Shown here: piece after piece, positions 19,198 through 34,763 of the stretch
Position numbering within the stretch: position 1 is the first letter of the stretch
How the letters are laid out: each line of letters starts with the position of its first letter
Sequence record: OZ195934.1
Direction: 5' to 3' (one strand)
DNA: 64,000 nt
Position numbers and translations under genes: made by a program
Notes under the pieces: model-generated
What the model was told of the DNA's origin: nothing
Databases searched by the model: none
The model's input: only the letters and a program-made list of their open reading frames with translations

Positions 19198-20631
19198 TTA
19201 TAAAGCGTATCGGTCGACACCGACAGTCTTCAGCATGATTTTCACTGGCTCAAGCTCACCACCCAACAGCGACGTTAGAATTGAAGGGCTGCAACCCGAC
19301 ACTAACGCTGTGTTCGCTTCACCTGATTTAACAGGCACGTTGTCTAGACGACCACGCAAGTTCCAGAACACTAGTTGCGGCATTTCGTAGCCCGCGTTCG
19401 CATACATGACTTTGATTGCATCGAAGTTCGTAGTGTTACGAGTATGCCAGCCACCGCCAGTACGAGCTTGATCGAATTCCATATCGCTCATGATAAGCAA
19501 TTTGGTTGGCATTTCGTCTTGCGACAAGTTTGCCGTACGAGCGCGTTCAAGAAGAACTTCGAAGCATCGTGTGATGTTCGTGCTCATATCTTCGCCAGAT
19601 CGTTGCATGTTGTCAAGACGCGACTTCAAGCTATCACCCGTCAACTTGTGAAAGTGCGGATCACTTGAGAACGAAATGAATTGATCTTTGAAGATACCCT
19701 CATTACGTTCAGCGACGTAGATGCCAAGAGACATCGCAACTTCTTTACAAGTCACACTACCACCGTGTTCACCGTTGATACCACAGCCCATAGAGCCAGA
19801 AACATCAACAACTGGAATCACGCGCTCGTCAGAGCCTTCCATGTAGTTCGGTAGAGCTTTCCATTGCTCATTTGCAACACGATGGTCACCCATTTTAACG
19901 CTGCGAACAACATCGTACGGGTAAACAGCACCTGCATTGATCTTCGCTTCACCTTTCACAAGCGATGTGATGTACTCACCGTATGCAGATTCAGCGTTAC
20001 GACCGAATGCTTTCTGATAGCGTGCAGACGCTACAGATGGCAGTTTGCCGAACTCGATCTCGTCCCAATTACGAGCACACATCTTCTGTTCAACAGTGTC
20101 AGACAAAAGAGAGATCACTTTACGCCACTGCTTCGCGTTTACACCAACCGACTTGATTGTGCGCTTGAACACGATAGCGTTTTTGCTGCGCTCACGAGGA
20201 AACCACTTAGCAGCAAGCGCGTTTTTGTCATTGACAATCGCGTGTGTCCACAGAGTGATAGCATCAGCTTCAAGAGAAGTACCGAACGCAGATACTAAGT
20301 CATCGAAACGACCAAGTTCTGGGATCTTGCGCATAACTAGACGCGCCACTTCTGGTTGTTCTTTACACAGACGTGCAAAGATTTTGCGGAAAGTACCGCG
20401 CTCACCTGCACCGCCACGCACGTCGCGAGACCATAGCAAGATGCGAGTTGCAAGCTCAGGGTTTTCACCGAATGCGCGATTAAACGCAGTTAGTGACTGA
20501 TCATTACCGCGCATAGCGCCGATAGTGAAGAACAAGTTTAGACACTCGTTACCCGAAGTGCTGTGTGTTACTGCACCGTTTGCTGTACGTGAATCGTTAG
20601 ATTGCATAGCGTTCATAAATAAACTAGTCAT
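19198..20631 (-). CDS. DUF2828 Ro60/TROVE-related protein with C-terminal vWA domain
   Basis: RDVRGGAGER, AAKWFPRE, VYPYDV, VVDVSGSM (MIDAS), SDMEFD, LVFWNL; GGAG SD before ATG 20631. Confidence 0.85.
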   Translation of the reverse strand: MTSLFMNAMQSNDSRTANGAVTHSTSGNECLNLFFTIGAMRGNDQSLTAFNRAFGENPELATRILLWSRDVRGGAGERGTFRKIFARLCKEQPEVARLVMRKIPELGRFDDLVSAFGTSLEADAITLWTHAIVNDKNALAAKWFPRERSKNAIVFKRTIKSVGVNAKQWRKVISLLSDTVEQKMCARNWDEIEFGKLPSVASARYQKAFGRNAESAYGEYITSLVKGEAKINAGAVYPYDVVRSVKMGDHRVANEQWKALPNYMEGSDERVIPVVDVSGSMGCGINGEHGGSVTCKEVAMSLGIYVAERNEGIFKDQFISFSSDPHFHKLTGDSLKSRLDNMQRSGEDMSTNITRCFEVLLERARTANLSQDEMPTKLLIMSDMEFDQARTGGGWHTRNTTNFDAIKVMYANAGYEMPQLVFWNLRGRLDNVPVKSGEANTALVSGCSPSILTSLLGGELEPVKIMLKTVGVDRYAL

Positions 20632-28999: not shown

Positions 29000-29076
29000 T
29001 GGATGCGTGGGAGTGGATTCGAACCACTGACCTCCGGCTTATGAGACCGACGAGCTGACCGCTGCTCTACCCCGCA
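29000..29076 (-). tRNA. tRNA-fMet-like (CAT)
   Basis: TGCGGGGTAGAGCAG initiator-like 5' end, loop CTCATAA; one extra A in acceptor 3' strand. Confidence 0.8.
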
Positions 29077-29080
29077 ATTA

Positions 29081-30985: not shown

Positions 30986-31100
30986 TGGCTGACCGATGCG
31001 GGACTCGAACCCACGACCACGTGCTTAACAGGCAATTAGAAATGCGGTAGCGATACTTATCAATATCATTTACGTGCTCTACCACTGAGCTAATCGGTCA
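30986..31100 (-). ncRNA. tRNA-Asn(GTT)-like RNA with 38-nt insertion after nt 28
   Basis: Removing 31035-31072 restores CGTGC-CTGTTAA-GCACG arm; 8-bp acceptor, G73, CCA. Confidence 0.8.
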
Positions 31101-31362: not shown

Positions 31363-31911
31363 CTACTTCTCTCGCAATGTAAACAGCAGATTGCGATAAT
31401 CGAAGTTTCGTTTGTTCTTTGTATTGTAGAAGCTAGTCCAGTCGATTGCAACGGGACAATTCTTACTACCGACACGAGCAATGAATATCTCGTGTGTCGC
31501 GCTGTGCTTCGCGTTATAAGCTCTTACTCGTTTTTCATAGTGAGCTATGTATTCTGCACAAGCAGCGTTGTAATCAGCTCTAGAGAACGTCTTACCTTTC
31601 ATAAAGCGTGCATCAAGATACGGACGAATAACCCGAACGCGTTCTCCCGACCATGCCATATTAAAGCTGTTTTCAATTTCACCTAGAATTTGACCAGTCT
31701 TTAAGTTACGGCTCAGTATGACCCAACAGCGTGTACGACGATAGTCTTCAAAACGCATCACCTTAATGTGTGCATTAATGAATTCATCGCGTTTAGCGTT
31801 GCACTCAATGCGTGCTGCACGACGCTGTTCTTCAGTCATCGACTCTCGAACTTCTTTCGGATACAATGTAGCAAAGCGTTTCGGGCAATCTGCCATCGTT
31901 AGCTTTTTCAT
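31363..31911 (-). CDS. Hypothetical basic protein
   Basis: 182-aa ORF coupled to upstream gene. Confidence 0.65.
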   Translation of the reverse strand: MKKLTMADCPKRFATLYPKEVRESMTEEQRRAARIECNAKRDEFINAHIKVMRFEDYRRTRCWVILSRNLKTGQILGEIENSFNMAWSGERVRVIRPYLDARFMKGKTFSRADYNAACAEYIAHYEKRVRAYNAKHSATHEIFIARVGSKNCPVAIDWTSFYNTKNKRNFDYRNLLFTLREK

Positions 31912-32117
31912 ATCATACCTCTCTTGCGTTTAAGTTGCGAACGCTCAATTTGATTGAAGACTTGCTTATCTTTTGCTTTATTGCGTCGAGAATTACCCCA
32001 ACGACTTCCAGCACATACACCAAAGCGGTCTTTTTTAAGCTTCTTAGCTAACCACAATGGTACTTCGACACGAGCACGTAAGTAGTGCTTTGCGATGTCT
32101 TTATAAGTCTTGCCCAT
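31908..32117 (-). CDS. Small basic protein
   Basis: ORF from MGKTYKD with AGAGGA SD. Confidence 0.6.
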   Translation of the reverse strand: MGKTYKDIAKHYLRARVEVPLWLAKKLKKDRFGVCAGSRWGNSRRNKAKDKQVFNQIERSQLKRKRGMI

Positions 32118-32130
32118 GATAATTTCCTCT

Positions 32131-32371
32131 TGTTGCCGCTCCGTGGAATCGAACCACGTCAAACACAACACCTCGTCAGCCCAATAAGAGTTTCGAAGTA
32201 AGAGCTTACTAGCACATTAAAGCACGGGGCATTATTTCTCTCAAGCAGTTTTCGACCACCGCGTGAGCTTTCTTATCCCCAGTCCCAGTGATTCAGAACG
32301 AAACATGATAGCGAGTCATGAGTTGAACTAATGTTGGGAAAACACTGCGTATTGTACACCGAGTAAGCGGC
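32131..32371 (-). ncRNA. tmRNA-shaped 241-nt tRNA-like RNA
   Basis: GCCGCTT/GAGCGGC acceptor, CGTGG TTCGATT CCACG T-arm, ACAATAC/GTGTTGT helix. Confidence 0.7.
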
Positions 32372-33005: not shown

Positions 33006-33128
33006 TGGTGGAGAGTGCGGGATTCGAACCACGCGGCCAAAAGATTTACTTAGTTAGTGTTTGCAGCATGAATACTTGACAATATTCTGTCAACGTTCTT
33101 TTGCTCTACCAGACTGAGCTAACTCTCC
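33006..33128 (-). ncRNA. tRNA-Tyr(GTA)-like RNA with ~45-nt insertion in anticodon loop
   Basis: Canonical acceptor, D and T arms; AAAGA/TCTTT stem enclosing 52 nt that end AAGTAAA. Confidence 0.8.
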
Positions 33129-33140
33129 ATTTAAAACACA

Positions 33141-33264
33141 TTGAGCAGGGTGCAGGATTCGAACCTGCGTCACGATCTTAGAATGATATGCTGTTTGGGT
33201 TGCTGAATACAAGCTATACAACTTGCGTTTATGCTACGTGTGCTAGCCACTACACCAACCCTGC
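33141..33264 (-). ncRNA. tRNA-Arg(TCT)-like RNA with 49-nt insertion after nt 28
   Basis: Removing 33188-33236 gives CGATC-ATTCTAA-GATCG; ends CAA; 17-bp flanking IR. Confidence 0.8.
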
Positions 33265-34063: not shown

Positions 34064-34315
34064 TTACGATTGAATGATAATACCGCTTTCCGTCTCACCG
34101 CGCTCAAGAGCTGCGTGCTTAATCTGTAGTTGTGCTACTGCTTGTTGAAGTTCTGTGATCGTCTGATCATATAGCTTCATGTTGCTTTGCATGTGTTTAA
34201 TCTGATCGCTCTGCAAACCAACGATATAGGTAAGCAAGATGATGCTTTCATTATCTTGCAGTTCTTCACCGTCGTTGTATTTCTTCAGAACAGATTGGAT
34301 TGTAATATCAGCCAT
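34064..34315 (-). CDS. Coiled-coil hypothetical protein
   Basis: ORF from MADITIQ. Confidence 0.6.
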   Translation of the reverse strand: MADITIQSVLKKYNDGEELQDNESIILLTYIVGLQSDQIKHMQSNMKLYDQTITELQQAVAQLQIKHAALERGETESGIIIQS

Positions 34316-34763
34316 TGTTTTCAGCCCATGACAAATCGAGTGGTTCAACGTATTCGTCTACAAGTCGAACTTCGGCTTCGACGAACAAGGGAGTGATTGC
34401 ATCGTCATACGAAAGCGTGACGTGCGGAGTATAGTCAGGGTAATCGTGAGTACCACCGATAGAGATAAGGTCTTCATGACGCGCTACAAGCTCAGGACAT
34501 TTCATCTTCGCAACAACTGCGTGATTACCGTCTTGAGTTTTCCAGCAATCGATATACTCAATAGTTGCTACGAATGTCGTATCAACGGCAGGCACATCAA
34601 TTTGATTGCGACTGTATAGAACAGTGACGTGAAATTTATCTGGATCTAAAGGATTTGCTAGACGAAGCGATGTCTGCAAGCGAACTAACTCTTGTTTACT
34701 CGATTCGTCTAGTTTGATACCAACGTACGTCCCCTGACTTTCAAGGAACGTAGATAGTTTCAT
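34308..34763 (-). CDS. acb1: 2H phosphoesterase, T4 57B / anti-CBASS Acb1 family
   Basis: Two HxT motifs (FHVTVLYSR, PHVTLSY); synteny 57B-57A-1-3. Confidence 0.85.
   Translation of the reverse strand: MKLSTFLESQGTYVGIKLDESSKQELVRLQTSLRLANPLDPDKFHVTVLYSRNQIDVPAVDTTFVATIEYIDCWKTQDGNHAVVAKMKCPELVARHEDLISIGGTHDYPDYTPHVTLSYDDAITPLFVEAEVRLVDEYVEPLDLSWAENNG

Follow-up and report, generated by a model that had tools for sequence, protein, structure and literature searches.

The tRNA region of a marine vibriophage contains the gene of a member of a new family of phage RNAs, predicted to be stable and built on a tRNA-like domain, although stable phage RNAs of this kind are themselves already known. 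Judged from its sequence and those of its relatives, the RNA is shaped like a tmRNA and yet is not a tmRNA, having neither alanine identity nor a message. The window (the whole stretch of DNA analysed, 64,000 nucleotides of sequence record OZ195934.1) is by all appearances part of a KVP40-like phage (T4-related, Straboviridae) of the ~253 kb kind, and is 100% identical to Vibrio phage 6E35.1a and its oyster-farm relatives. The RNA gene occupies 32131..32371 on the minus strand, where the initial annotation had placed it, so that RNA position 1 is window position 32371 and the RNA is read 5' to 3' down to 32131. It lies within a region in which ARAGORN identifies 26 tRNAs, all on the minus strand, between 25095 and 32622.

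A blastn search recovers the element from about 49 phage records, all of them Vibrio phages of the KVP40/nt-1 kind, with 18 copies identical to that of the window and 31 at 71–77% identity. From these an alignment of nine Vibrio-type sequences representing about five lineages was assembled (6E35, KVP40, phi-pp2, VH7D, F86, 1.081.O, QD01, VS1 and nt-1), in which conservation sets in at the first base of the acceptor stem and ends at the discriminator. The predicted 3' end of the window RNA has its last acceptor base at position 237 (window 32135), followed by the discriminator A at 32134 and the trailer ACA, the same A-ACA ending read in the initial annotation. A covariance model scores the window RNA at 214 bits. 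Scanning IMG/VR with exact and degenerate patterns returned only KVP40 and VH7D; one pattern match each in the JGI metagenomes and the GTDB genomes fell in GC-rich coding DNA and was discarded as due to chance. In one phage, PVA23, both the RNA and the 5' part of the gene downstream are missing, which indicates that the pair is dispensable for growth on the host from which PVA23 was isolated.

The RNA has no entry in Rfam 15, and no description of such an RNA was found in the published literature. With its occurrence in several phage lineages, this makes a new class of tRNA-like RNA, one of the possibilities first raised for this locus, the best-supported reading. GenBank records mask the RNA under spurious "hypothetical protein" reading frames (for example in F86, QD01 and KVP40), and because these frames overwrite it, describing the RNA would also correct the annotation.

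Covariation and the parts of the fold

Folded alone, the sequence has an ordinary energy (z = -1.1), and judgement on the structure therefore needs relatives. The consensus fold obtained with RNAalifold from the nine sequences contains 69 base pairs, 36 of which stay paired through changes on both sides; the covariation among homologues on which the initial annotation had let its proposal depend is present. Standard pairs fill 92.1% of the cells, and none of 500 shuffles equalled the observed values. When the pairing partners were slid by one to three columns, a control that preserves the relatedness of the sequences, pairing came to 37–44% and the covariation score fell from 0.48 to about 0.1. 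Because compensatory changes are found throughout the molecule and are combined with invariant blocks in lineages that are otherwise 71–77% identical, the comparison points firmly to purifying selection on the RNA structure.

The same observations bear on the idea that the element is a functionless remnant, whether a tRNA or tmRNA pseudogene in decay or an intron-containing tRNA. Several "pseudo-tRNAs" are annotated in the cluster of KVP40-type records, and PVA23 is viable without the RNA, as such an idea would have it; compensatory changes and invariant blocks contradict decay, however, and splicing would restore neither a D-arm nor an anticodon arm. No group I intron model of Rfam matches the RNA, and the known tRNA group I introns are longer than its insert. 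We regard a functionless remnant as very improbable.

The two ends of the RNA are predicted to come together as a tRNA-like domain, in which a 7-bp acceptor stem is set on a canonical T-arm and accompanied by a stem-less GG loop. The acceptor stem pairs GCCGCUU (32365..32371, minus strand, as are all features of the RNA) with GAGCGGC (32135..32141); its seventh pair is a U7.G66 wobble, four of the six scored pairs show two-sided change, and GCCGC switches to GGCGG among the relatives. The T-arm (32142..32158) consists of a 5-bp stem and a UUCGAUU loop, CGUGG-UUCGAUU-CCACG in the window, with two-sided change in 4/5 pairs and a stem that occurs in five different sequences. Between the acceptor and the interior lies a D-like loop of ten bases, ACUCGGUGUA (32355..32364), for which no D-stem partner exists. 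In these three elements, including the perfect T-arm and the missing D-stem, the fold agrees with the initial annotation.

The picture differs for the helix that closes the interior. Helix P2 pairs RNA positions 18–27 (32345..32354) with positions 204–212 (32160..32168); all cells (100%) are paired, three pairs are changed on both sides, and in the nt-1 group A-U pairs are replaced by U-A or G-C. The register proposed at the outset, ACAATAC/GTGTTGT, shows no two-sided change and gives way to this shifted one, while the long-range pairing of CCCAA with TTGGG breaks in the relatives; CCCA instead pairs locally with UGGG at 85–88, and four of these five pairs have changed on both sides. The sole strong match to a promoter consensus (32379-32351, minus strand) has its -10 hexamer, TACAAT, inside P2 and is taken as coincidental.

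P2 encloses a four-branched core of about 185 nt, the branches being H3 to H6. H3 (32283..32339) is a long irregular hairpin with invariant CAUUA and GAAUCAC, and 13 of the 20 pairs in its helices 3 and 4 show two-sided change. H4 (32226..32281) rises from a basal helix through an internal loop rich in A to an apical hairpin, with two-sided change in 12/15 pairs of helices 5 and 6; its apical loop, GUCGAA (RNA positions 116–121, window 32251-32256), is found at the same place in all seven of seven Vibrio-type sequences. The interior hairpins noted initially, CATGA/TCATG, GCGGT/ACTGC and CTCA/TGAG, are located in covarying helices and are retained. H5 (32204..32213), the hairpin GCU-AGUA-AGC that RNAalifold places after a conserved AUGCUG block, is weakly supported, since the changes in it are one-sided only. 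H6 (32169..32200) is a nearly invariant hairpin containing UUCGAAAC, whose pairing is neither backed nor contradicted because the sequence hardly varies. The consensus fold consists entirely of nested hairpins, and a possible pairing between loop and helix, UCGAA with UUCGA, which would amount to a pseudoknot, involves invariant bases only, so that covariation speaks neither for nor against it.

A wider family of loci and the hallmarks of tmRNA

The gene downstream of the RNA belongs to the protein family phrog_15953, and its distant homologues lead to loci of similar layout in other phages: Vibrio phage D479, the Cronobacter phages LPCS28 and S13, Citrobacter phage Ci1, several metagenomic T4-like contigs, and a 353-kb IMG/VR contig (L020). 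At each of these loci the two ends of a stretch of 224–268 nt upstream of phrog_15953 make up an acceptor stem of 7 bp and a T-arm of the UUCGAUU type, and GG lies in a loop behind the 5' acceptor strand. In the T4-like phages the stretch stands directly before the Shine-Dalgarno sequence of phrog_15953 or before a small inserted reading frame, and in L020 the RNA is separated from phrog_15953 by some 190 nt and by a tRNA-like sequence. All 14 representatives of the family have the three terminal elements, with the GG of the D-like loop invariant (14/14), the T-loop reading TTCGATT in 12/14, and acceptor sequences that covary freely. A separate alignment of five Cronobacter-type sequences has two-sided change in 16 of 57 pairs, and the acceptors of this type, counting a further member (L031), include GCUCGUU/CACGAGC, GCACGUU/UACGUGC and GCGAGUU/CACUCGC.

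Ends, size and position are all that the four subfamilies share. Profiles built from the cores alone gave no nhmmer match across the four, and the Vibrio covariance model (R1) returned only scores at the level of ordinary tRNAs on the D479, Cronobacter-type, L020 and T4 loci. Core motifs that appear by eye to be shared (UCUGAUAUG and GAUAGAAAG) are not claimed here because of the null nhmmer comparison across subfamilies. Position, size and ends make common descent of the whole RNA across the subfamilies plausible, short of proof.

At default settings ARAGORN reports neither a tmRNA nor a tRNA on this stretch, Rfam has no match on the RNA at gathering thresholds, and at E<=10 only a 17-nt fragment of the T-arm is found; the searches proposed in the initial annotation, ARAGORN and the tmRNA models, are therefore negative at normal thresholds. 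An ordinary cloverleaf (RF00005) is likewise not found, there being no D-stem and no ARAGORN or Rfam tRNA match.

The description of the locus as tmRNA-shaped holds all the same. The terminal domain has the layout of a tmRNA head, with a covarying acceptor, T-arm and long closing helix P2 and an invariant, stem-less GG loop. When the ARAGORN thresholds are cut to 80–90% of default, the RNAs of KVP40, nt-1, LPCS28 and L024 are called with exactly the same boundaries. The syntenic counterpart in L020, with acceptor GGGGUUG/CAACUCC, has both G3:U70 and A73, its 3' end resembles the tmRNA consensus, and RF00023 aligns it from end to end at a sub-threshold 15 bits (E 5e-4, against a gathering score of 47). 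These likenesses speak for a mimic or descendant of tmRNA whose head would bind host SmpB, and perhaps stalled ribosomes, and which would add no tag but sequester or redirect trans-translation during infection. We consider such a role unlikely, as also the SmpB/EF-Tu or ribosome-rescue decoy suggested in the initial annotation, which the variable discriminator and the unconserved CCA weaken.

The 3:70 pair is C:G in all Vibrio-type sequences, bearing out the initial remark that alanine identity is lacking, and in 13 of the 14 representatives it is C:G, U:A, A:U or G:C rather than G:U, leaving the L020 RNA as the only one with G3:U70 and A73. The discriminator varies across the family among A, G and C. 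The 3' trailer of the window RNA reads ACA; the KVP40 group has CCA at this place and the nt-1 group has AC, so that CCA is encoded in one Vibrio lineage only and is missing from most, whereas 25 of the 26 tRNAs of the window encode it. An enzyme might nevertheless supply CCA after transcription. Enumeration of all frames in 11 relatives revealed no conserved frame or stop for a tag peptide, in line with the earlier statement that no tag is recognisable; indels among the relatives are mostly of single bases rather than multiples of three, and the tags given by the low-threshold ARAGORN calls differ between phages. An apparent frame, "...YFETLIG..CCV", was rejected, since the invariance of the nucleotides accounts for it; in F86 an insertion of 1 nt breaks it, and its stop is lost in 1.081.O and the nt-1 group. 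The adjacent phrog_15953 protein has no SmpB-like fold, and the L020 and window RNAs share no core sequence, so that common descent of the two is not shown. Since the functional hallmarks fail (the 3:70 pair, the discriminator, and the frame and stop, with a trailer that is not conserved), the RNA is tmRNA-shaped but not a tmRNA, and the lack of both alanine identity and a tag message marks it as a non-coding RNA of tRNA-like form not described before, and not as a ribosome-rescue RNA.

Neighbouring genes and candidate partners

Directly after the RNA come the Shine-Dalgarno sequence AAGAGGAAA and a basic reading frame of 69 aa (31908..32130, minus strand, ATG at 32117), confirming the observation that the SD of a small basic ORF abuts the 3' end of the RNA. 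The predicted product has 21 K/R against 5 D/E residues, belongs to no Pfam or PHROG family, and is encoded only in the 6E35 and nt-1/VS1 lineages. The next gene, phrog_15953 (31363..31911, minus strand, 182 aa), is the next conserved downstream gene in every lineage that bears the RNA, and adjoins the RNA in four subfamilies that are unrelated in sequence. Its protein has no Pfam domain; the AlphaFold model (pLDDT 85) has no fold match in the PDB, and its matches in BFVD are confined to its own family. The absence of a PDB match argues that the protein is not SmpB-like, and the candidate of a hidden SmpB or of another known RNA-binding fold was rejected on the combined Pfam, PDB and BFVD results. 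Distant homologues of phrog_15953 occur without any such RNA; this, and the lack of a recognisable RNA-binding fold, count against a reading in which the RNA binds protein.

The reading we tentatively favour, which we hold to be possible at somewhat less than an even chance, is a stable, non-coding molecule of about 237 nt that is matured by tRNA-processing enzymes and carries a protein-binding core acting in trans. The RNA would be co-transcribed with the neighbouring tRNAs and cut at its 5' end by RNase P; a 7-bp acceptor stem with a T-arm is a recognised design of RNase P substrate. Its 3' end would be trimmed in the manner of a tRNA, a host enzyme might add CCA, and the tRNA-like fold would shield the molecule from exonucleases. 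The conserved core would be the working part and would bind a protein, candidates being the phrog_15953 product and the phage Ro60-fold protein; with the latter as partner, it would have the part of a Y RNA. The long invariant blocks in loops and single-stranded parts of the core (GUCGAA, GAAUCAC and UUCGAAAC) fit contacts with a ligand better than the role of a spacer, and since the cores of the four subfamilies have no detectable similarity, a common protein-binding core is not demonstrated.

The position of the RNA also suggests an action in cis, in which its tRNA-like end would serve as a cleavage signal that frees the mRNA of the downstream gene just before its Shine-Dalgarno sequence. 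In three T4-like subfamilies an SD and ATG indeed lie 1–15 nt past the 3' end of the RNA, whichever reading frame follows, and the loss in PVA23 takes in both the RNA and the 5' part of the gene behind it. An acceptor and T-arm would suffice as such punctuation, however, which leaves a covarying and invariant core of ~185 nt unexplained, and the ordinary tRNAs of the cluster already supply signals of this sort. We therefore rate a cis-acting element as improbable.

The Ro60-fold candidate is encoded at 19201..20631 on the minus strand and was recognised through Pfam (DUF2828 and DUF7788) and Foldseek. The top five Foldseek matches, which have probability 1.0 and E values from 5e-8 to 7e-6, are all Ro60/Rsr proteins, namely Ro60 of Thermus phage phiLo, Rsr of Deinococcus, Xenopus Ro and human Ro60. 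Bacterial and phage Y RNAs are partners of Ro60, imitate tRNA, contain a GNCGAA motif and have their genes on the same strand near Ro60 (PMC4201824; PMC12135203). YrlA of M. smegmatis, whose acceptor stem measures 7 bp, is cleaved by RNase P and acquires CCA in vivo (PMC4201824).

A Y-RNA-like role for the window RNA could be imagined along these lines, with the GUCGAA loop as the contact to the Ro60-fold protein, the tRNA-like end tethering or protecting the complex, and host exoribonucleases such as PNPase being recruited. It draws on the presence of the Ro60 fold in the genome, on the tRNA mimicry, GNCGAA motif and possible RNase P and CCA processing of Y RNAs (PMC4201824; PMC12135203), on the invariance of GUCGAA in the Vibrio type, and on the gene order of the Cronobacter type, where the Ro60-like gene is followed by Y05Q, the small-RNA cluster with the RNA and then phrog_15953, the Ro60-like gene standing within ~1.3 kb of the cluster on the same strand. 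In the window that gene is 11.5 kb from the RNA, although also on the same strand, and Ro60-like genes occur in thousands of T4-like phages, far more than the lineages found with the RNA. GNCGAA is fixed in the Vibrio type only rather than family-wide, and chance alone would give ~0.35 copies in each RNA. The Rfam YrlA model (RF02553) has no match on the RNA, the D-arm is absent, and the topology is reversed, the termini of a Y RNA forming the Ro60-binding stem. A weak YrlA match of 28 bits at 33070-33196 spans two neighbouring pseudo-tRNAs, and the three shorter long-armed pseudo-tRNAs of the cluster are at least equally good candidates for a Y RNA. We accordingly find a Y-RNA-like role distinctly unlikely, name the Ro60-fold protein only as a candidate partner of the RNA, and treat the Ro60/Y RNA link as a lead rather than a finding.

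A bolder proposal, and a rather doubtful one, would make the RNA a message-less descendant of tmRNA that forms a two-gene module with phrog_15953 and has been retained in several lineages of large T4-type phages. Its head would give it access to SmpB, to stalled ribosomes or to other machinery that handles tRNA, and in this way it would reprogramme ribosome rescue or RNA surveillance in the infected host. If true, viral tRNA-like RNAs would gain a new functional class. Whichever reading holds, the extra small RNAs in the tRNA clusters of large phages have been without explanation since RNAC and RNAD of T4, and the present RNA offers a clean, well-bounded and strongly covarying case; its head resembles that of tmRNA, a conserved gene accompanies it, and the genome also encodes a Ro60-fold protein. 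Three routes are testable, namely ribosome rescue, Ro60-type RNA surveillance and a new RNA-protein pair, and phage-host pairs for such tests exist in nt-1 on Vibrio natriegens and KVP40 on laboratory strains of V. parahaemolyticus.

Comparison with known RNAs

With tmRNA (SsrA; RF00023 and its clan) the phage RNA has in common the 7-bp acceptor, the T-arm, the stem-less GG D-like loop and a helix P2 that closes a large interior, and the smallest one-piece tmRNAs are only slightly larger. It differs in having no G3:U70, fixed discriminator or conserved CCA and no resume codon, tag or stop, and the consensus predicted for it shows hairpins in place of the pseudoknots PK1 to PK4.

YrlA and other Y RNAs (RF02553) resemble it in their mimicry of tRNA, in a motif of the GNCGAA type and in occurring alongside a Ro60-fold protein, and the M. 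smegmatis YrlA shares with it an acceptor of 7 bp that suits RNase P and the addition of CCA. In contrast to YrlA, the ends of the phage RNA form an acceptor stem and not a Ro60-binding stem, it has a T-arm only and no D-arm, and it is about twice as long. The Y RNA motif, GNCGAA(N0-1)G, lies near the 5' end in the terminal stem, while the GUCGAA of the phage RNA sits in an internal hairpin loop (positions 116–121) and is not present in all subfamilies. Y RNA genes are recognised by a Ro60 gene within ~4 kb on the same strand, a distance that is 11.5 kb in the window and ~1.3 kb in the Cronobacter type.

Closer in setting are two further groups of phage RNAs. The tRNA region of T4 yields two stable RNAs, RNAC and RNAD, to which no function has been assigned (PMC3014915; PMC9697503). 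Like the RNA described here, rnaC and rnaD (species 1 and 2) are stable RNAs from the tRNA cluster of a T4-type phage, and in the rnaC gene sequence an acceptor-like 3' strand comes after a T-arm. They differ in their lengths of 139 and 119 nt and in their gene neighbourhood, and rnaC is tRNA-like in its 3' portion only; no similarity to the phage RNA was found by sequence or model, R1 giving tRNA-level scores in the T4 region. The elements annotated as tRNA-Pseudo-3, -4 and -5 in KVP40 share with it the cluster, the strand and a plan of tRNA-like ends with an extra structured insert, and such long-armed pseudo-tRNAs are likewise conserved from the Vibrio phages to the Cronobacter phages. They have, in contrast, a normal D-arm, score 49–50 bits with the Rfam tRNA model, and carry an insert of only ~50 nt in the anticodon loop.

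Long-insert pseudo-tRNAs and an atypical tRNA-Met

Three pseudo-tRNAs of 110-123 nt, all on the minus strand, are found in the tRNA cluster at window positions 30990-31099, 33009-33128 and about 33136-33258, with counterpart entries in a related locus (L015:5273-5393 and L015:5403-5515), and are annotated in KVP40 as tRNA-Pseudo-3/4/5. All three have normal acceptor, D and T arms with the anticodon loop replaced by ~50 nt, and two of them score 49-50 bits against the Rfam tRNA model. The insert carries a motif in the order ACGCAA, hairpin, GUAUUCAGCA, and because this motif is also present in Cronobacter phage LPCS28 the pseudo-tRNAs are conserved non-coding RNAs and not products of tRNA decay. 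A weak match to the Rfam bacterial Y-RNA model YrlA (28 bits versus a gathering score of 69) at 33070-33196 on the minus strand covers the T-arm of one pseudo-tRNA and then the D-arm of the next, so it probably arises artefactually where tRNA-like genes stand in tandem. The only one of the 26 window tRNAs to lack an encoded CCA end is the second tRNA-Met(cat) (29004-29077, minus strand), which starts with an unusual acceptor strand, UUGCGGG.

The tmRNA-shaped RNA and the phrog_15953 gene in related loci

A natural deletion in Vibrio phage PVA23 (L016:2960-3120) removes the upstream small ORF, the entire tmRNA-shaped RNA and, from the 5' end of the phrog_15953 gene, approximately 60-80 codons, fusing tRNA-Met onto the truncated gene. 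The GenBank records of F86 (L005:1527-1631), QD01 (L007:1508-1639) and KVP40 (L001:3218-3243) overlay the RNA with short "hypothetical protein" ORFs or a lengthened start of the downstream gene, which are probably mis-annotations.

The 353-kb IMG/VR contig L020 contains a ~225-nt tmRNA-like RNA with G3:U70/A73 (L020:2117-2344) that is not detected by ARAGORN. Downstream of this RNA, and immediately upstream of the phrog_15953 homologue, stands an odd tRNA-like sequence (L020:2441-2511) whose anticodon loop has only 5 nt and which is called tRNA-His(atg) by ARAGORN. The distant homologue in the 195-kb contig L030 adjoins a T4-type RNA ligase 1 gene, and a T-arm-like hairpin (L030:1470-1510; GGGGG-UGCAAAU-CCCCC) ends ~10 nt upstream of its start codon; a search for an acceptor 5' strand to accompany this hairpin found none.

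Ro60-like and Acb1-like proteins

The T4 57B homologue (34308-34763, minus strand), labelled "RNA ligase" in older records, matches Pfam Acb1, the anti-CBASS 2H phosphoesterase (E = 1e-44). The DUF2828 + DUF7788 protein (19201-20631, minus strand) has a predicted structure that matches Ro60/Rsr, the Y-RNA partner, over its full length (Foldseek probability 1.0), and the presence of this family in thousands of T4-like phage contigs suggests that Ro60-like proteins are common among T4-type phages.
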